Source of the DNA: Zygnema circumcarinatum SAG 698-1b
Taxonomy: Eukaryota > Plantae > Zygnematophyceae
Length of the DNA: 64,000 nt
NCBI GenBank assembly: GCA_037447605.1
Contig: CM074806.1
Location: 558,001 to 622,000 of the forward strand
Direction: 5' to 3'
Shown: positions 5,200 to 62,032 of the stretch, in pieces
How the letters are laid out: every line of letters begins with the position of its first letter
Position numbering within the stretch: the first letter of the stretch is position 1
Notes under the pieces: model-generated
Seen by the model: the letters and a program-made list of their open reading frames with translations, nothing else
What the model was told of the DNA's origin: nothing
Databases searched by the model: none
Translations under genes and position numbers: made by a program

Positions 5200-5440
5200 C
5201 GGGAGCGCGCGAGGGCGGAGGATTTAGGGTTTAGGGTATAGGGTTCAGGGTTTAGGGTTGAGGGTTTAGGGTTTAGGGCCTTTGAAGGAGCGGACGGGGC
5301 GTTGGCGACACCGGGAGGTTTCGGGGTTCAGGAGGGTTTAAGGGGTAGGGATTGAAAGTTTGGGGTTCAGGGCGAAGTTTTAGTCGGTTACGGTTGAAGG
5401 CCGAAGGCTTAAGAGCAAGGGCTTAGGGTTAGGGTTTAAG
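5200..5440. repeat. Telomere-like/telobox-rich tract (GGGTTTA on +) upstream of ABCI11 in the divergent ABCI11/DUF268 intergenic region
   Basis: Multiple tttaggg/ttcaggg/ttgaggg units. Confidence 0.75.
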
Positions 5441-5482: not shown

Positions 5483-5690
5483 GTGACTTCATTGACTTTC
5501 TTGACATCGCTGACTCTGTTGACTTCATATTTGCAAGGACTTCACTTTTTCTGCAATGGTATCATTGACTGCATTAACTTCATCGGCCTTATAGCCTTAA
5601 TCACTTCATTGACTGCAAGGACCGCGTTGACTCCGTTCACTCCATTGCCTTGACTTCCTTGACTTCCTTGACTTCCTTGACTCTGTTGAT
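5483..5690. promoter_or_regulatory. 9-bp-period minisatellite containing nine TTGACT (W-box core) copies in the divergent promoter region
   Basis: TTGACT at 5492, 5519, 5565, 5609, 5627, 5650, 5659, 5668, 5677. The repeat is seen directly; regulatory function is unproven. Confidence 0.5.
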
Positions 5691-5737
5691 TCCTGTGTGT
5701 TCCGTTTTTGCAACATAAGCTGCTTCGCTGTTTGCAG

Positions 5738-8539
5738 ATGAAATTTCGTCCCTTCAGCAACAAAGTTCAGTTGGCAGGCGGCGCCACTCTGCTCATCGTT
5801 GCTTTTTGGGCCTTCGCAGCCTTCAACGAGCTATTCCCAAACGGTGCGTTCTCCCAAAAAAAAAAAAAAAAATGACCTCCATAAAACCCTTCTCCTTTAT
5901 TTCTATATTTCCAAGAAAAACCAATCATTTGCATTATTTATTTATTGTTTATTTTTTAAATTCTGTTCAGCATCTTGCACCGACTCTCCGTTGAATAAGG
6001 CCTCCTCCTCCTCCCCCTCTTATCTGATTGAAAATTTTCCGATTCGGGGCCCTCTCTCATGGAGCGTTCTAAACGACGAACTCAAGCGAGAGTTTCTCCT
6101 TCAAGGCAAAATTTCGTTAGAAATAATGGAACTATTCAACATGGAACCGTTCCTTTCGGGCCAACCTTTCAGCTATTCCAAAACTCTCCGTAGAGAATGG
6201 ACTCTCGCCGGCATCAACGAGCTCGTCGAAACTGCTAAAAAAAGGGACATAAACCTAAAATTATGCGTCTACGGAAAAATCTGCAACCGTGATTTTTTCA
6301 ACGCCTTTGAAGTGTACCCCATTGAAGGAAAGGAGGTGATGGTTTTGGGGAGCCAGTCTCCATGGGCCGAGGCTCTATGTATTGCGTTTGGGGCAAAATC
6401 CGTTACAACCGTCGACTTCAACCCGCCATCGATCCTTGAGGGGCCGTCGCCCATCAAAATTATGAACGCGGAGGACCTCGGAAAGTTCGGGGAAACTTTC
6501 GACGTGATCGTTTCTTACTCGTCTCTGGAGCACGACGGACTCGGGAGGTACGGCGACCCCGTCCATCCGTACGGAGACATAGAACGGATGAAGAAGGTGA
6601 GTTCCAAACCCTAAAAACCCTAAACTCTAGACTCTAGACCCTAAACCCTAGACACTAAACCCTAGACTCTGGACCCTAAACCCTAGACACTAAACCCTAA
6701 ACCCTAGACACTAAACCCTAGACTCTCGACCCTAAACCCTAGACACTAAACCCTAAACCCTAGACACTACACCCTAGACTCTGGACCCTAAACCCTAGAC
6801 ACTAAACCCTAAACCCTAAAGCCTTAACCCAAAACTCTAGACCCTAAATCCTCGCCCCTAAACCTTAGACCCTAAACCCTAGACTCTCGACCCTAAACCC
6901 TTGACCCTAAACCCTAAACCCTAAACCTTAAACCTTTAACCCTAAACCCTAGACCCTAAATCCTCGCTCTTAAACCTTAAACCCTAAATCCTAGACTCTA
7001 GACTCTAAACCCTAGACCCTAAACCCTAAACCCTAAACCCTAAACCCTGAACCCTGAACCCTAGACCCTAAATTCGCCCTAAACCTTAGACCTTAAACCC
7101 TAGACTCTAGAGCCTAAATCCTAGACCCTAAACCCTAGACACTAAACCCTAAACCCTAAAGCCTTAACCCTAAACTCTAGACCCTAAATCCTCGCCCCTA
7201 AACCTTAGACCCTAAACCCTAAACCTTAAACCTCTAACCCTAAACCCTAGACCCTAAATCCTCGCTCCTAAACCTTAAACCCTAAACCCTAGACTCTAGA
7301 CCCTAAACCCTAGACCCTAAACCCTAAACCCTAGACTCTAGACCCTAAACCCTAGACCCTAAACCCTAAACCCTAAACCCTACACCCTAAACTCTAAACA
7401 CTGAACCCTAGACCCTAAATTCGCCCTAAACCTTAGACCTTAAACCCTAGACTCTAGAGCCTAAATCCTAGACCCTAAACCCTAGACACTAAACCCTAAA
7501 CCCTAAAGCCTTAACCCAAAACTCTAGACCCTAAATCCTCGCTCCTAAACCTTAAACCCTAAACCCTAGACTCTAGACCCTAAACCCTAGACCCTAAATT
7601 CGCCCTAAACCTTAGACCTTAAACCCTAGACTCTAGAGCCTAAATCCTAGACCCTAAATCCTAGACCCCTACACCCTAGACCCTAAACCCTAAATCCTAA
7701 ACCCTAGACCCTAAATCCTCCCCCTAAACCCTAGACCTTAAACCTTAAACCCTAAACCCTAGACCCTAAGTCCTAGCCCCTAAACCCTAGACCCTAAACC
7801 CTAGACTCTAGACCCTAAATCCTAGACCCTAAACCCTAGACCCTAAATCCTCGCTCCTAAACCTTAAACCCTAAACTCTAGACTCTAGACCCTAAACCCT
7901 AGACCCTAAACCCTAAACCCTAAACCCTAAACCCTAAACCCTAAACTCTAAACCCTGAACCCTAGACCCTAAACCCTAGACTCTAGACCCTAAATCCTAG
8001 ACCCTAAACCCTAGACCCTAAAGCCTAGACCCGAAACCCTAGACCCTAAACCCCCCTAAGATTTCTAAAACCCTAAATTCCCTCTTTTCTTGTGGGATGG
8101 GGGGGCGGTGGGGGGCTGATTTCCTTCGAATTATAGCTTTCGGTTAGAGTTTCTCTTACCACAAGTGTCTTTAAAAACCCTAACAACCAGGGTTTATCTG
8201 AATTCGTGTCTTTCAAATTAAGTCGAAAGATTTTGATTAAGATTAAGATTACCGCTTTGATGTATTGAAATTGAATATAGAATCCAAAAATCTGCAAATT
8301 CTGGTCGGCAGATCAAGCAGTTCCTGCGTCCCGGCGGCCTGTTCTTCCTCGCCGTTCCGATGGGCGCCGACGTCCTCACATGGAACGCCCACCGCGTCTA
8401 CGGCGAAATCCGTTTTCCGTTACTGATCGACGGCTGGAAGGTCGTGCAAACCATCGGCGATCTCGAATGGACTTTCCGCCAAAACGCGACGCACCATCAC
8501 TTGCAACCCATACATGTTCTCCAGGCAGAGACACAATGA
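5738..8539 (+). CDS. DUF268-family (SAM-methyltransferase-like) protein with N-terminal signal anchor; 3 exons
   Basis: Exons 5738-5843, 5971-6596, 8312-8539 join in frame with GT-AG sites. Motifs VMVLGSQSPWAEALCIAFGAKSVTTVDFN, SYSSLEHDGLGRYGDPVHPYGD and LRPGGLFFLAVPMGADVLTWNAHRVYG match the recalled DUF268 consensus (SSIEHxGLGRYGDP...LKPGGLLFLGxPxGxDxxxxNAHRIYG). The N-terminus is hydrophobic (GATLLIVAFWAFAAF). Confidence 0.88.
6606..8077. repeat. About 1.47-kb interstitial telomere-like array (CCCTAAA/CCCTAGA/CTCTAGA) filling intron 2 of the DUF268 gene, with a higher-order period of about 340 bp
   Basis: Continuous heptamer variants; the marker aaaccctaaagccttaaccc recurs at about 6811, 7151 and 7499. 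Confidence 0.95.
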
Positions 8540-8885
8540 CGTCAGCATAGCGCATTCATGGCATCTAGGTGGATACATGAAGAAGTCAGCATGCCGCATT
8601 CGTGGTGTCTAGTGGAGGTAGGATGGCGTCAGCATGTCGTATTCATGGCATCAACGTGGATACATGATGATGTCGGCATGCCGCATTCATGACACCTTGG
8701 TGATGTGATGACGTCAGCATGTCCCATTCGTGGTATCTAGGTGGAGGTATGATTACGTCCGCATTCATGACATCTAAACGGAGGTGTGGTGACGTCACCA
8801 TGTCGCATGCATGTCATGTGGATATATGATGATGTCACCACACTGCATTCATGGCATCCAGGGAGAGAAACGCTGACGTCAGCGT
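8536..8885. repeat. Degenerate tandem minisatellite (about 43-bp subunits, about 85-bp dimer) with TGACGTCA cores; the first copy supplies the DUF268 stop codon
   Basis: Exact TGACGTCA at 8537, 8709, 8790, 8874, a variant near 8623, and recurring gcattcatggcatct segments. Confidence 0.8.
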
Positions 8886-9971: not shown

Positions 9972-12059
9972 ATGGCCCCCTTCACTACCCCCCACATTCT
10001 TCGCCTTGCTTGTCTCGGTCTCTTTGCTTCATTAACACTCCCCCAAAGTCAAGCAAGTTGTTCGCTCTCATACCCATCCCTGAATGATGCGATCTATGCC
10101 GAATGTGCCGTCCTCGCGGACAGTTCCACGCTTGCATGGACATGGAACGACACCTTACTTACATTAAACGGCGTCTACATGTCCGCCCCGTCCGTTGCCG
10201 GCGGCTGGATTGCATGGGGCTTCAACCACGACGGCAAGAGCGAGATGGTCAATTCGAGCGTTTTGGCGTGCTTTGCTGATGACAGGGGTCTAGTTTTAGG
10301 CCAATACTTCCTCGAAAAGCCTGATTTTGACGGTGTATATTTAGGTTCCGTTTTAAATGTAACTTCCGCTTCATGCGTTTCTGACAGCAGCACTATTCCA
10401 GAGACCCTCTACATACAGTTCAGTATAGTGTTAGGTTACACGACCAACCTCATTCAAGTTTACGGTAATGGAGAAGTCATGGATAAGAGGTTGGGCCCTC
10501 ACATGCCCAACGGAACTATAGCCGAAACCATGCTCCGGGAATTCAAAGCAGCACCTTATGTTCCCCCTCCAACATCACTTCCGTTCAGTCCTGCATCACC
10601 CCCTCCCTTACCGGCTTCACCTTTGAGCCCTCTCCCGCCACCACCTTCTCTGCATGTTGTGAGTACCTTCCTCTTCCTTCTACCTTTCTCTCTTCCCCAT
10701 AATAATATTGCCCTTCCTTTCCAAACCTACTACTTTTTTTTTCAAAAACCTTCAACCCTCGAAGATCTGCGTGATCTAAACCCTTGAAGACCCAAACATT
10801 GAAAATCTTAAAAGTATCGTACGCCCTATGTAATCATGTGCAGTCTTTCTGGTGCTTGCCTTCAGACATCTTGCCAATACATTCTAGCCTTCTTCTCCAC
10901 AATGGAGTACACGTTTTGCACAACTTTCAGCGACAAGTCTTATCTTGTGTGGAAATTTGAAAACAGCTCAAATATTTTCGATGGCCTGTTCGTGGCGACT
11001 CCGAGAAAACCCGGAGGATGGGTCGCTTGGGGTCTGAATCTTTTCGGTCGCTCCGAAATGGTGGGTTCAAGCGTTTTGGCCTGCTATAGGGGGCAAGAAG
11101 GGAGCCCCATTATCGATCAGTATTACTTGGAGGGCTACTCTCCCGAAAGCGTCTACCTCGATAAGAAAGGCCTCGACTTTACTTCTCAAATGTGTCAAAT
11201 TGATTCCTCCACAAACCTTGAAACTATCACTATGCAGTTCTCTATCGACTTTGGGGACGTGACCTCCTGGAAGAGTATTCATGCTAAAGGTGATACTGTG
11301 TTGGACTACGCCGCGAAGAAGCTCGGGCAGCACTGCAGCGATTGCTATATGGTCGATGGCGAGCTCAGAGACTTCGGAGTTGAGGGTCCCGCTAGCTCAA
11401 AACCGGCACACGCGAGCTTTAAATATGTACGTTCTTTTTGTTACATTGGGTGCCTGATAAACCCAAAACCTTAAATTTCTGGTTTCTGTAAATTATCCTC
11501 ATTCGAATTGATGCCGGGTTTTGACAAAAGTTATATGGGGTTTATTCTTGCTTGAATTACCCACAGGCGCATGGAGCTCTCAGCGCCATAGGATGGGGCA
11601 TCTTTATTCCTGTTGGAGGAATGATCGCGCGATATGGGAAGCCCTTCACGGAGGAAATGTGGTTCTATGTGCACGTCCCCTGTCAGTTTTTTGGATACGT
11701 AGTGGGAGCTATTGGGTTCGCTTTGGGACTCAAACTCTGGAGTTGGACAAAGAGGGGGCGCGACATTCACGCCATTTTGGGGATTGTTGTGTTCTGTCTC
11801 GGTACATTGCAGGCAAGTTGCAGATCTGGATGACGAGAGAATGTTGGGAGGAGGAGGGCGAGGCTGGGAGGGAGGGGGAGAAGGAGAGGGCACTGCATCT
11901 GGAACAGGGGAGGCAGGAAGGGAGATGGGAAGGGAGCCTGGGGAGAGAGAACGGTGAGAGGGAGAAGGCGAGGTATGGAGGAGGGAAGGGATGATAGGAA
12001 GGGGACTGGATCTGGGGTAGGGGCGGGAGACAGGGAAGAAGTAAGAGAGAGAGAGAGAG

Positions 12060-14244: not shown

Positions 14245-17200
14245 ATGGCTGCCGCTGCAATCTGCTCGCCATGGCGGACTCCCACTTCTTTCTCCCTCTC
14301 GTCCCCCTCCTCCTCCTCCTCCTCCGGCCATTCGACTCTCTCCATGGCTGCCAGGAGCGGCGGCTCCGGCGTCGCCTTGGCCATGGCGGCAGGAAGGAAG
14401 GGTTTAGGGTTTAGCAGTCACGGCGGAGTCTTAGGGTTTTCGTTTTCTCACAGCCCTATGATTAAGGTTTCAAAGGGATGGCGCCATGGCGGTGTCGGAG
14501 TGCAGGCCGTGGCGGGAGGAGGGAAGGGTCTGAGCGGCTCCGAGATGCGAGAGGCTGCAGAGCAGATGGTATTAAAGATTTTCATTTATTTTTGAGTGAA
14601 TGCATGTGAACATGGAGGCTGATTGTGCGCACCATTTAGGGTTAGGGTTGCTGTTAGAGAGCATGAAACAGAGACATGGGTTCTGAATCTATTTTTTTCC
14701 TCGTTCTATTATGCGTGCAGGTCAACTTTTTTGTGGAAAGTGGTATGGTGATCGGTTTGGGCAGTGGCCCCATCTCCGCGGAGGCAATTCGATACATCGG
14801 AGAGAGCCTCCGCGAAGGGAAGCTGCGCGATGTGAGAGGTGTGCCCATGTAGGTTCGCGCACACCCCAAAAGGTCCATGGAATGTGAACGGGCAGTCAAG
14901 CAATCCCAGTCCATTTCTCGGTCCCCTTCTTGCCCGAGAAAAACTTTGTCAAGCTTGTTGAAAATTGTTAGTACTGCTCATATTGTTAAAATGGTTGAAG
15001 TTGTTGAAGTTGTTACCATGCATGTGAGTAACCCTAAAAGCCCATTTGGCTTCTCTCTCTCTCTCTCTCGCTCTCTCTCTCATCCTTACGCCTTCTACAG
15101 GGCCAGCCTGGCAGGTCTTCTGTGAGTGCTTCGGAGGCAGCCAAAGTGGGCCTTCCTCTCTGCACTCTCGAGACAAACCCTAAAGTGAGGCCAAACCCTA
15201 ATTCAGCCAGACCCCATACATGTGAAGGCAATCCGTGACTTGTTTCTCTGATTATTCCGCCCTCTTCGCAGCTTTTGAAGCTGTTTGAGAAGCGAACGTA
15301 CTTCTCAAATTATGTTTATTTTCTTTAAGATGAAGGAACAATTCAGCAGACATGCAGGGTTGATGAATTGTAGGGTTTTGGAGGGCTTTGAAAGGGAGTT
15401 TATTGTATTATCTTTCATATTTTTATTTTTACTTTATGGGGTGGGTGATGCAGCTGAGCTTGGCCTTCACGGATGCGGATTTAGTGCAAGAAGGGACTCT
15501 GTACGGCGTGCTGGGGAGGAGGGGAGGGCTCGGCAGGGAGTCCATAGTGAAAGAGAAGGTGAGGGGAGAGAGAGGGAGAGAGGGGGAGAGAGAGAGGGAG
15601 CATTGGAACTAAATGTCCTGAATTTCCTGTTGTATCATTCTCTCTCTCGCACTCTCTGTCTCTTTCCCGTATCATCTCTCCGCTCTCTGTCTTTTTGTCC
15701 TCTTTATCGCCCCCTCTCTCCACTCTCTCGACACTCTATCAACGATTCCATCACTATTCATCTATTTTGCAGAGCGTCGCTGAGTCAGCAGAGCAATTTG
15801 TATTTTTGGTGGCGGAAGAGAATTTTGTGGAAAAATTGGATGGTTCGGTGCCCGTTGTCATTCGGCCAGTGAGTAAAAACTCTGTTGAATCTCTCTGATT
15901 TTTGTCAATTTTTCATTTTCCTCGTATACTGGATACTTGCAAATTTCATCCAGCGGTATTCGTCTCAAAGGAACAGAAGTTGATTATACGCTGGTGAAGT
16001 TGGGAGTCCATTTTCTTTTGGGATATTTTCATATATTTATTGGTTGCTCATATTTTTCCGGGACTTGGGCCGACAGGAAAGCTGGCTGGATGTAGCGGAA
16101 GAGATTGATGACTGCTTCTTAGGAGATGCAGAGGTTTGATCTCTCTCTATCTCTCTCTCCCTCTCCCCTCTCTCCCTCTCGCCCTCTCCCTTTTTCCCTG
16201 TCTCCCTCTCTCCTCTCTCCCTCTCGCCCTCTCCCTTTTTCCCTGACTCCCTCTCTCCCTCTCTCCCGTTCTCCCTCTCTCCCTCTCTCCTTCTCTCTCT
16301 TTCTCCCTCTCCCTCTCTCCCTCTCTCCCTCTCTCCCTCTCCCACTCTCCCTCCCTCCCTCTCTCCCTCTCTCCCTCTCTCCCTCTCTCCCTCNNNNNNN
16401 NNNCCCCCCCCCCCCCCCCCCCCCCCCTGATGAAGCGCCATTCTCATCTTACCCCTAAACCGCCTCTTGGTTTTAAAACTGAAAATCCCAATATTTTGGT
16501 CCCTAGAATTTCTCAAAGTCCCTTTGTTCCATTTCAGGTCTGGCGGAGGCCCTCTATTGGAACCGCGGGACCGCTCGGCGGCGACTTCCCATTGGTCACT
16601 GAGCACGGCCACTTTGTGCTTGACGTCATCTTCACCACTCCCATTGAGGACCCAGGTGCCTCCCTTTCCTGCTCAACCCTACAACCCTAAAACCCTGCAA
16701 TCCTAAAACCCCTACAACCCTAAAACCCTGAAACCCTAAACCTCAAAACCCTAAACCTAAAACTTTGCAGAAGTCTATCCCAGAGGAGTTAATATTCTAA
16801 GGCCAATGGTTCAGTTTTAGGGTTTTGATATGGCTGCGCGGGAGGGAGGGAGCAGGGGAGACGGCGGAGCTGCTGGAGGGCATTGCGGGCGTTGTGGAGC
16901 ACGGCCTCCTGCTGGACCGCGTGTGAGAGGACCGGGGGGACCCTTAAACTCTAAACCTTGACAACTGGCAACTCTAAAACCCTGCAACCCTTAAAATTAA
17001 ACAAACTTTAAAGATCAAGGAAAAGGAAAGGACCCTGACGACCCTTCAACCCTAATTCCTTAACTACTTTACAGAGTCCGAGACGCCGTAGCTTGCATGG
17101 TATCACTTGAAGTACTTATTGCTGACAAACCCTAAAGTCTATACTCTCAACTCTCAACCCTCAACCTTAAACCCTCCACCGTGAACCCTGAACCCTGAAC

Positions 17201-59100: not shown

Positions 59101-60776
59101 AACATTGTTCCGAACTCCCTTGAACTCCTAAAGACACTCAAAACATGAACAAGCGTGAGTCCCAAAAGTCTATAGCTTGCTAGAGTATGCGAGAATGATA
59201 CAGCATTTTGGCTTACTTTGTCACTGTAACATGTCAATGCAGAGTCGCGGATGCTCCCTCCCCCGGCTCACAAAGCCCAAGCCGTCAATATGAGGGGGAT
59301 TATGCTCCCTCCGCCATGAAGGGAGGGGAGGCAGCAGTTGCGGAGCGCAAGCCGACAGCCATGGCCTTAGCGAGAAGCTGGGGGCGCTCTATCACCATGC
59401 GTTTCTCTCGTGAGTGCAACAAAGCACGTTGTAATGCCTGTTTGTCGTCTTGGAATTTTCGAGGGTGTCTAAAGATTTGAGCGCTGTTGGGTATTTTAGG
59501 CAAATTCGATGTCATCGCAAATGTTCAAACATGCGCAGAATGGGATGAACAGCCTTGTATTCTTTAAGACCCTAAAACATATGTACGTCATATCGGATGC
59601 AGAACAAGATGTGGCCCCCGAGGCGTATCCGACGGCTGAGGTGGTCAGTGTGGCTGTGATGCCATCGTGGCCGTCCACTCCGCGATCTCACATGATCTCA
59701 CGTCTCTCATTCGACCAAATTCGATTGGCAACAAATAACTTCGACACGGACAACATCCTTGGAACCGACGGCATTGCTCGTGTTTACAAGTACTATTTCC
59801 TACAAACTCTCAAATCCTCTCTTTTGTTTTAGTGCTTGAACTTCTCAGACCATGGACTGCCTTAGGCACATTATCCATTGTTGGATGACTCTGAAATCTT
59901 GCAGGCCTCAACTCCCCCTGTCATCTCCCCCCCCCCTCCCCCTTCTTTTGTCCCTTTCAGGGCTGTGCTTCCTGATCGGAGAATAGCTGTCGTGAAAGAG
60001 CTTGAATTTCTGGGAAGCGGACGGAATTCGTCAGAGAAGTTTTCGGAGGACATGGCTTTGTTTCAACATTTGGAGCATCGGAATTTGGTCCGAATGATCG
60101 GATATTGTGCGGAAGAAGATAGCCGATTGGTTGTGTTAGAGTACATCCCCAACGGAAGCTTGGATCAACATCTCCATGGTGGGTTGTTGTTGTCGGCAAA
60201 CGTGCATCATGCACAAAATTGTCTGTCACTACGCTCTTCGTCAGAAATATTCAACTGAATAGCTCAACAACTTCAACTGTCGATTGGGTGTTCTATGCAG
60301 ACATCGACATGGGACCATGCCTGGATTGGGACGTCCGTATGCACATACTTCTCGGAGTTGCGAAAGGTCTTGACTTCTTACATGACTTGGATCCTCCGGT
60401 ATGTTTGATACAACCTTTCTGGAACACGTAACTCCAAATTCTAAATCTGCATCAAGAAAACCACGAAAGCATGTGATCATAAGCTGTCATCTTTGTCAAT
60501 TGCATCTTCCTGATTCTCTGTTTTCTTGCGGCTAAGCAGCTTGTCCACAAGGAACTCCGTGCAACCAATGTACTTCTCGACAACAGCTTCGACGTAAAAT
60601 TGAGCGACTACGCGCTGACGCATTTGGCCGGACAGCCTGCGGCTCCACCAACGCTCTCTGCGACGGTTAATGTGGTAAGTAAATTACTGCATTCTACATT
60701 CTGCACTGTATTGCATCGTATTCCGCAGCTTTTTGCACCTTTGATTGAGTTGAATCTATTCATTACTAACAGCGTC

Positions 60777-60816
<40 letters not shown>

Positions 60817-62032
60817 CCTCTCGCTCCTTCCATATATTCTCCCTCCATTTTATTGGTCTGAACTTTATTTGTTTTCAGGAAGTGGCGGCAGGAATCGCTG
60901 CCCCAGAGTTAGCGTGGGCGCAAGAGTTCACAATAGAGATGGACGTCTACGCCTTCGGAGTGCTCATCCTGGAAGTCATCACAGGGCGGAGACCCCTCGA
61001 CACCAAGCGACCGGCCAACGAGCAAGCGCTCGTCCGATGGGTACTGCCTTTATCCAATATCCTCAAAACCCTAAAGCTTCCAAAACCTCCAAAAAAACCC
61101 TAAAGTCAAATCGACGTAGCCTCATCCAGTTGTCTTCCTCCTACCCTTCCCTGTTCCATGCAGGCGCGGCCCCGTTTAACGGAACGGAACCGTGTGGAGG
61201 CCATGGTGGACTGGCGACTGGACGGCGTATACAGCAGCCCTGCACTGTACCAGGCGGCCCTATTGGCGTGGCAGTGCCTTCAGAAGGAGCCCGAATCTCG
61301 GCCCACCATGGCGCAGGCAGTAGAGGTGTTAGAGAAGCTGCAGAGCCTCCCTATAGACGCCATGGCCATGGCGGCCATGGGGGCGCAGCAGCAGCTGCAG
61401 ATGCCAGAGCCGCGCTTGCACGAGTTCCTCGGAGTGGACATGCCGGAGGATTCGCAAGGTCGCGGACATGGCGGAGTGGGAGGAGGAGGAGGAGGGGGAG
61501 GAGGGATAGGAATGGAGAGTCCCGGACAATGGGTGAGCTAATAACTGAGCGGGGTGATTGGGTTTGAATGTGGAGATCCTTTCGAAGTCTTTGAAGTTTG
61601 TGGCATTTCTAGAATCCCTTAAGTTTCAAGGTTTACATTAACAGCCATATTGCCGTCAATTATTTCAAATTTTCATTATCTTTTTTTCACTTCACATGCT
61701 GAAGTACTAGCTGGGGTTTAAGTAAGAATTTGAGCTCCTGTTTGAGCAAAGCGTCGTTTCTGCGTGTGTTGCAGTCCCCGGCGGTGCAGATTGCCATTCC
61801 TGTGGAGGAGGACGAGGAGGAGGAGGAGCCGATGGCGGCGCAAGTCGCGGGTTCGAGCCTCGCTGGCGGCGCCATGGCGGGCGCGGACGGCGGCGCGCCC
61901 GAGTGGATGTTCCGCCGCTCGCAGACGATGGAGCGCGGGGCCGCCGGCGAGCGCCAGTACGAGCGCACGCTCTCGGCGCCGCTGAGCCCGCGAGAGATCG
62001 ACTTCCCGCCGCGCCGCTCGCTGCGGAAGTAG
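56168..62032 (+). CDS. LRR receptor-like kinase, STRUBBELIG/SRF (LRR-V)-like, probable pseudokinase
   Basis: Signal peptide, LRRNT (NNWEGDPCLDNWTGIKC), about 6 LRRs mostly in phase-2 exons, a Cys-rich juxtamembrane module, TM (WWSIILIASGG...ICFCIY), and a kinase domain with AVVK, HKELRATN, SDYAL and GRRPLDTKRPANEQALVRWARP. The terminal exon is about 61775-62032. Confidence 0.88.

Follow-up and report, generated by a model that had tools for sequence, protein, structure and literature searches.

A membrane-anchored DUF268 gene of the alga Zygnema circumcarinatum as a candidate glycan methyltransferase of the secretory pathway

The locus and its predicted protein

The window analysed here is a stretch of 64,000 nucleotides of DNA from Zygnema circumcarinatum, and all positions below refer to it. 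The gene of interest occupies positions 5738-8539 of the forward strand, where reading of the sequence gives an intact gene with three exons and GT..AG introns. Gene model and splicing are predicted from the sequence, and the exons were searched singly (5738-5842, 5973-6596 and 8312-8536, forward strand). The features of the locus are as follows.

5738..5843, forward strand: exon 1, with the ATG at 5738, a basic cytosolic tail and a signal anchor (both predicted); ends in phase 1, donor ACG/GTGCGT
5771..5824, forward strand: hydrophobic span of 18 residues (aa 12-29), in exon 1
5844..5970, forward strand: intron 1, 127 nt, GT..AG, 26% GC, phase 1, directly behind the anchor
5971..6596, forward strand: exon 2, acceptor TGTTCAG/, donor AAG/GTGAGT; Ser/Pro-rich stem, N-terminal subdomain and first half of the predicted methyltransferase domain
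6036-6062, forward strand: conserved N-terminal subdomain FPIRGPLSW, in exon 2
6336..6374, forward strand: motif I equivalent, i.e., strand beta-1 and the G-S-x-x-P-W loop; predicted SAM-binding loop
6402..6422, forward strand: strand beta-2 ending in the invariant V-D-F (from model secondary structure and conservation)
6498..6578, forward strand: strand beta-4 and the signature block S-S-L-E-H-D-G-L-G-R-Y-G-D-P..P.G-D; likely active site
6597..8311, forward strand: intron 2, 1715 nt, GT..AG, phase 0
6606-8053, within intron 2: degenerate CCCTAAA telomere-like array
8312..8539, forward strand: exon 3, acceptor GGCAG/; second half of the predicted methyltransferase domain (PGG..VP.G.D, WNAHRVYG), stop TGA at 8537-8539
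8483-8491, forward strand: single N-x-T sequon, in exon 3

The telomere-like array was found in a tandem-repeat scan (TRF) of intron 2, run up to position 7000 and again from 7060. A local tblastn of the 64,000-nt window, with 7005-7055 masked, gave no second DUF268 copy. Exon 2 is present whole in six sequencing runs of one organism, which come from three studies. The open frame, the canonical splice sites, the continuity of the Pfam match across exons and the intron positions common to relatives all agree with the intact, spliced three-exon ORF that had been proposed in an earlier, sequence-only reading of this DNA. Judged from its sequence, the locus represents a genuine and intact gene in the nuclear genome of a zygnematophyte alga, with a predicted protein of about 320 residues.

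The same reading had noted a type-II-like N-terminal anchor, and exon 1 indeed encodes an 18-residue span that looks like one, flanked by basic residues on its N side (K2, R4 and K9) and by acidic residues on its C side. It is already known that positive charges mark the cytosolic flank of a membrane span (the positive-inside rule), and because of these flank charges a type II topology (N-in, C-out) is predicted. The layout of the protein, i.e., a short basic tail, a single N-terminal anchor, a Ser/Pro-rich stem and the DUF268 domain, is as in Golgi type II glycan-modifying enzymes, and the same tail, anchor and stem are present in members of its clade and in the model of P0001, the closest full-length homologue. 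The domain of the Zygnema protein would accordingly face the lumen, and the protein would reside in the Golgi.

Anchoring separates the groups of the family. Homologues of the same clade have an N-terminal span with a Kyte-Doolittle mean of at least 1.7, and the long members that group with the Zygnema gene (about 300-360 aa) are anchored, including the Closterium genes and the genes of two eukaryote-type contigs (L080 and L081). Most of the bacterial proteins, at about 240-260 aa, begin directly at the conserved subdomain, with no anchor, members from Chlamydiae have signal-peptide-like starts, and viral members have no anchor.

Family membership and predicted fold

Against PF03269 (DUF268), exon 2 scored 57.9 bits (E 1.5e-15, profile positions 2-95) and exon 3 scored 52.8 bits (E 5.7e-14, profile positions 96-145), both above the gathering score of 25 bits (Pfam), and the membership proposed beforehand is thereby borne out. 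Since one profile runs gapless and with no overlap over two exons that are split by a 1.7-kb intron, a chance match is excluded; the junction of exons 2 and 3 (..RMKK / IKQFL..) likewise aligns to full-length homologues with no gap or insertion. For the DUF579 and QUA2-type families, no exon gave a Pfam match at E values up to 1. The Zygnema gene is a further member of a known but uncharacterised family, and the literature searched reports no activity for any member of PF03269.

Within the signature block, nine columns are invariant across 98 homologues, and the Zygnema gene keeps all nine. If the anchored clade is taken alone, 28 columns are invariant and 21 near-invariant; of these the gene keeps 27 (the exception being Leu changed to Met) and all 21, respectively. 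With so many residues kept, a frame open through three exons with canonical splice sites, and an exon GC3 of 0.60-0.73 versus a GC of 0.26 in the AT-rich intron 1, it is very unlikely that the gene is an unexpressed or decaying copy that is intact in looks only, even though none of the six runs that contain exon 2 is on record as RNA and telomere-like repeats have spread over 1.45 kb of intron 2, as one might expect of a pseudogene.

The fold was modelled on P0001, which is 50% identical to the Zygnema protein, with the 98-sequence alignment. The AlphaFold model (pLDDT 86.7, pTM 0.81) consists of an N-terminal helix, a disordered stem of low confidence, the small conserved N-terminal subdomain and a Rossmann-type methyltransferase domain with the seven-stranded Rossmann-like alpha/beta arrangement of class I. 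Its top Foldseek matches are SAM methyltransferases throughout (probability 1.0 for many of them), and in VIA-align the model superposes on NRMT2 with Z 13.4 and rmsd 3.9 over 178 residues, with NNMT and ToxA close behind. The SAM-methyltransferase-like fold that had been named for the family is thus supported by prediction on a close homologue; a sequence search for solved structures gave no useful relative (one match at E 0.98). In class I methyltransferases, an Asp at the end of strand beta-2 binds the ribose of SAM, and in the model the G-S-x-x-P-W loop and two Asp residues, the invariant one after beta-2 and another on beta-4, would sit at the class I SAM-binding places.

The enzymes matched in structure are N-methyltransferases for protein N termini, nicotinamide and toxoflavin, with no sugar O-methyltransferases among them. 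For a predicted model this is a generic class I match, which is silent on the substrate. That the best matches are protein N-terminal and small-molecule N-methyltransferases would nevertheless suit a luminal SAM methyltransferase that acts on something other than sugar hydroxyls, i.e., on uronic acid carboxyls (a pectin-type ester), a secretory protein, a lipid or a small metabolite, and this has to be weighed against the genomic context of the family below.

Relatives, shared introns and origin

Zygnematophytes are green algae closely related to land plants. The "plant genome" of the sequence-only reading needs to be corrected, as the host is such an alga and no plant in the narrow sense; the nearest named relatives are from Closterium. 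Among the best 120 matches, these make up about 30 protein clusters from nine strains, with 38-43% identity over exon 2, while the matches of higher identity (50-53%) are Logan proteins. The 323-aa ORF of P0001 runs without interruption on a transcript-like contig of 1.5 kb, and P0003 (53% identical) is encoded on an AT-rich genomic contig (L002), where the gene has the three-exon layout seen in Zygnema: behind an anchor exon, the first intron (phase 1) comes right after the anchor, and the second (phase 0) directly follows ..RMKK. In Closterium, the P0011 gene (L009) is interrupted at both Zygnema positions and at one extra site. Since both intron positions are common to L002 and the Closterium gene, the introns were in place before these lineages diverged, which makes the gene old in the group.

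Two trees each unite the anchored members in a single clade, with SH-aLRT values of 82 and 84, which do not amount to strong support. The Zygnema gene is sister to P0001 and then to P0002. The Closterium proteins (e.g., P0011 and P0040) have the N-terminal anchor, the signature residues and the two intron positions as in Zygnema, but they form a separate and much expanded branch of the clade. Lotharella P0129 and the eukprot protein P0149 were placed outside the anchored clade where they were included, and the MMETSP protein P0068 was basal in the clade in the first tree and outside of it in the second. Two transcripts of Leptophrys vorax nest within the Closterium clade; because this amoeba eats such algae, contamination by prey is likely. 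The membrane-anchored clade, Closterium included, is new to the literature searched.

Two origins had been offered for the gene, loss from angiosperms or lateral acquisition, and it is the recent form of the latter that the shared introns speak against. It is true that the family is mainly bacterial and viral, that its occurrence in eukaryotes is patchy and that P0018, which groups with the anchored proteins, is encoded on a giant-virus-like contig, as would be expected if the gene were a recent bacterial or viral acquisition or a contaminant. Nevertheless, two spliceosomal introns at positions common to Closterium and L002, a signal anchor of the eukaryotic type, a clade with Closterium genes, genes of two eukaryote-type contigs and many further members (SH-aLRT 82-84), the distance of the sampled giant-virus forms and, as regards contamination, the recovery of exon 2 in runs from three studies make such an explanation highly improbable. 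An ancient transfer from bacteria is possible, given the patchy eukaryotic spread and the trees. We also considered a giant-virus origin of the algal clade and rejected it, as the sampled GVMAG forms have no anchors and lie in distant clades.

In regard to land plants, neither of two homologue searches (with a word-based candidate step) placed an embryophyte protein in its best 120 matches, where about 30 Closterium proteins were listed, and DUF268 is not mentioned in land-plant papers in the literature searched. From these searches the family looks absent from angiosperms and land plants, in agreement with the earlier remark that it is not a standard angiosperm family. Nematode members were also missing from the best 120 matches, and they are therefore more distant from the Zygnema protein than the bacterial ones.

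Glycan context and candidate function

Six prokaryotic or metagenomic neighbourhoods, picked by the size or name of the contig and not by outcome, were inspected around DUF268 relatives.

L003 (Syntrophobacteraceae): a GT41 gene and GT4 genes, of which one encodes a protein that also matches FkbM (Methyltransf_21) weakly
L005: a 20-kb run with GT1, GT2, GT11, aminotransferases, epimerases, UDP-glucose dehydrogenase and an adjacent FkbM gene
L007 (chlamydia-like): DUF268 followed directly by GT10, with GT11, two GT92 and more methyltransferases close by
L082 (Pirellulales): an epimerase, an FkbM gene and two GT2 genes
L084 (Parachlamydiales): two GT11, three Gly_transf_sug and one GT2 gene
L083 (Fibromonadaceae): no glycan-related gene

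Glycosyltransferase genes thus lie at most three genes from DUF268 in five of the six neighbourhoods (all except L083), with GT11 present in three. GT10, GT11 and GT92 are families of fucosyl- and galactosyltransferases (CAZy), and such neighbours in bacteria weakly hint at fucose- or galactose-type acceptors. FkbM methyltransferases (PF05050, Methyltransf_21), an unrelated Pfam family, co-occur with DUF268 in four of the six neighbourhoods.

Viral contigs contributed 70 loci with DUF268 relatives, of which giant-virus MAGs account for at least 14, and the DUF268 protein of L005 recurs unchanged on a contig classed as viral. A GT25 domain is fused to DUF268 on a 369-kb viral contig (L030) and FkbM to DUF268 on another (L064), while four viral proteins of about 650 aa (L060, L061, L063 and L073) have an unrecognised N-terminal domain followed by DUF268. 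Because FkbM and DUF268 co-occur in bacterial clusters and in one fusion, the pattern suggests that they may act together, on different positions or sugars rather than redundantly.

Around the Zygnema gene itself we looked for a glycan gene cluster and discarded the idea, as thirty long ORFs of the window gave only a weak DOMON/DUF568 match and a kinase fragment. The downstream gene at 9972-11474 (forward strand) has a signal peptide and two DOMON/DUF568-like repeats. The earlier proposal of a glycan O-methyltransferase gains comparative support, from the neighbourhoods and fusions of relatives, and none from the genes beside the Zygnema copy.

The DUF268 proteins of C. elegans, a family of 11, are mostly secreted or anchored (PMC3534327), and their genes are clustered with glycosyltransferase genes (PMC7614267). 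Caenorhabditis members such as K04A8.1 match the same PF03269, have 310-380 aa and mostly begin with a signal peptide or anchor (PMC3534327, PMC7614267). In Spirogyra, a Yariv-precipitable glycoprotein contains 2-O-MeRha, 3-O-MeRha, 3-O-MeGal and 4-O-MeGlcA (PMC7612518), and of these sugars only GlcA is methylated by a known enzyme family, DUF579 (PMC12209756). Golgi SAM transporters are known in plants (10.1101/2021.07.06.451061). Since there are methylated sugars in Spirogyra with no known enzyme, and since SAM transporters exist in the Golgi, a luminal sugar methyltransferase is plausible. More generally, the enzymes that methylate neutral sugars are stated to be unknown in algae, bryophytes and nematodes (PMC12209756, PMC7773692, PMC7614267).

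Two kinds of plant enzymes resemble the predicted layout of the Zygnema protein, namely DUF579 enzymes (GXMT and AGM1/2, which make 4-O-methyl-GlcA) and the putative pectin methyltransferases of the QUA2/DUF248 type, in which a tail, an anchor and a stem precede a luminal SAM methyltransferase domain that needs import of SAM into the Golgi (10.1101/2021.07.06.451061, PMC12209756), although both belong to other sequence families than DUF268. In the chlorovirus PBCV-1, domain 3 of A064R methylates O-2 of glycan-bound rhamnose and A061L then methylates O-3; both are class I SAM methyltransferases, and in A064R the domain is fused to glycosyltransferase domains (PMC9614988). In the literature searched, these are the sole assayed non-bacterial enzymes that methylate neutral glycan sugars as ethers. 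In architecture, A064R resembles the GT25 and DUF268 fusion of L030, whereas A064R and A061L are soluble viral proteins, unlike the anchored Zygnema protein.

We therefore regard a luminal, SAM-dependent glycan methyltransferase of the secretory pathway as the best reading of the gene, and as a modestly probable one. The product would be a single-pass type II protein with a short cytosolic tail, the 18-residue anchor, a stem and a luminal class I DUF268 domain. It would most likely reside in the Golgi or elsewhere in the secretory pathway, where SAM imported into the lumen would serve as methyl donor, and it would put methyl groups on sugar hydroxyls of glycans in transit, which may be polysaccharides of a wall, mucilage or AGP-like type or the glycans of proteins. 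The use of SAM, a glycan as substrate, and ether rather than ester chemistry are what we infer here from the fold and the comparative context.

The other substrates named above, to which L083 with its context devoid of glycan genes could be added as a supporting case, are the main alternative but an unlikely one, because five of the six prokaryotic contexts and two fusions tie DUF268 to glycosyltransferases or sugar-nucleotide enzymes, and a uronic-acid ester would itself still be a glycan target. Within the preferred reading of a glycan methyltransferase, the particular target suggested earlier, 3-O-methyl-rhamnose, is disfavoured. Mosses, hornworts and ferns contain much of this sugar (PMC12209756), and the land plants rich in it gave no DUF268 relative among the best 120 matches, so that, by parsimony, 3-O-MeRha is probably made by another family.

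Taken more widely, DUF268 could be the missing family of eukaryotic Golgi enzymes that place methyl ethers on neutral sugars, with the anchored members acting on zygnematophyte walls, mucilage or glycoproteins, the nematode members on fucose or mannose, and the bacterial and giant-virus members on surface glycans. We hold this broader claim to be tentative, with the balance tipping slightly against it. The walls of charophytes, bryophytes and ferns, like the glycans of nematodes and molluscs, bear O-methylated neutral sugars as a taxonomic hallmark, and innate-immune lectins of fungi and animals recognise methylated glycans.

What is newly brought together here is the occurrence of glycosyltransferase genes near DUF268 in five of six prokaryotic relatives and the viral fusions of DUF268 with GT25 and FkbM. 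Together with the Zygnema gene, this evidence makes an anonymous Pfam family a concrete, clonable candidate for a methylation enzyme, for which Closterium, with its many paralogues, and C. elegans could serve as test systems. If the glycan prediction should fail, DUF268 would still be a candidate methyltransferase of the secretory pathway. If both the function and the absence from land plants are true, the gene would stand for a glycan decoration that was retained in zygnematophytes and was not carried onto land.

Algal-clade proteins on a virus-like contig and filed under an amoeba

One membrane-anchored DUF268 protein of the algal clade (the N-terminally anchored members that group with the window gene and Closterium proteins), P0018, is encoded on a 34 kb Logan contig from SRR9290673. 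P0018 lies there among densely packed intronless ORFs that are without Pfam matches, together with a KilA-N protein, an arrangement resembling that of a giant virus or an inserted viral segment. Two other homologues, the transcripts P0027 and P0048 (EukProt), are filed under the vampyrellid amoeba Leptophrys vorax, yet they are nested within the DUF268 clade of Closterium and probably entered the amoeba's transcriptome from its prey.

Viral fusion proteins and chlamydia-like clusters

DUF268 fusion proteins are encoded on viral contigs:

L030:7167-8786, GT25+DUF268
L064:7158-8600, FkbM+DUF268
L060:6831-8804, protein of about 650 aa
L063:6885-8828, protein of about 650 aa
L073:6630-8531, protein of about 650 aa

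The proteins of about 650 aa are encoded in giant-virus MAGs and have an N-terminal domain of 370-480 residues that matched no Pfam family.

The DUF268 genes of chlamydia-like bacteria carry a signal peptide and are clustered with glycosyltransferase genes of GT10, GT11 and GT92, families that are better known from animals:

L007:8391-15345, glyco-gene cluster with DUF268
L084:8001-16774 (Parachlamydiales), glyco-gene cluster with DUF268

This set resembles the glyco-gene clusters of C. elegans.

Repeats and neighbours of the Zygnema gene

Telomere-type arrays lie inside and upstream of the window's DUF268 gene:

1196-1377, shorter array, upstream
5212-5279, shorter array, upstream
6606-8053, degenerate CCCTAAA array, inside intron 2

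In the repeat scan, the intronic array (about 1.45 kb) showed 76% matches with 7005-7055 excluded. One upstream array, about 460 nt 5' of the start codon, has the opposite orientation (AGGGTTT).

About four copies of CCTTGACTT are present at 5648-5694, 45-90 nt 5' of the start codon, and this unit contains TTGACT, the W-box core of WRKY factors. At the stop codon begins a 44-bp tandem repeat (about 5.3 copies, 8536-8764), with similar units continuing to about 8900; each 44-bp unit holds the ACGT-core palindrome TGACGTCA, a bZIP/CRE-like site. A short N run marks an assembly gap near 16.3 kb, within low-complexity sequence (about 16150-16400).

Other coding features of the window are:

9972-11474, + strand, next gene downstream, signal peptide and two DOMON/DUF568-like repeats
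60600-61103, + strand, protein-kinase domain fragment near the window's end (Pfam E 2e-5)

The two DOMON/DUF568-like (AIR12-type) repeats are similar to each other, with a weak Pfam match (E 0.004).
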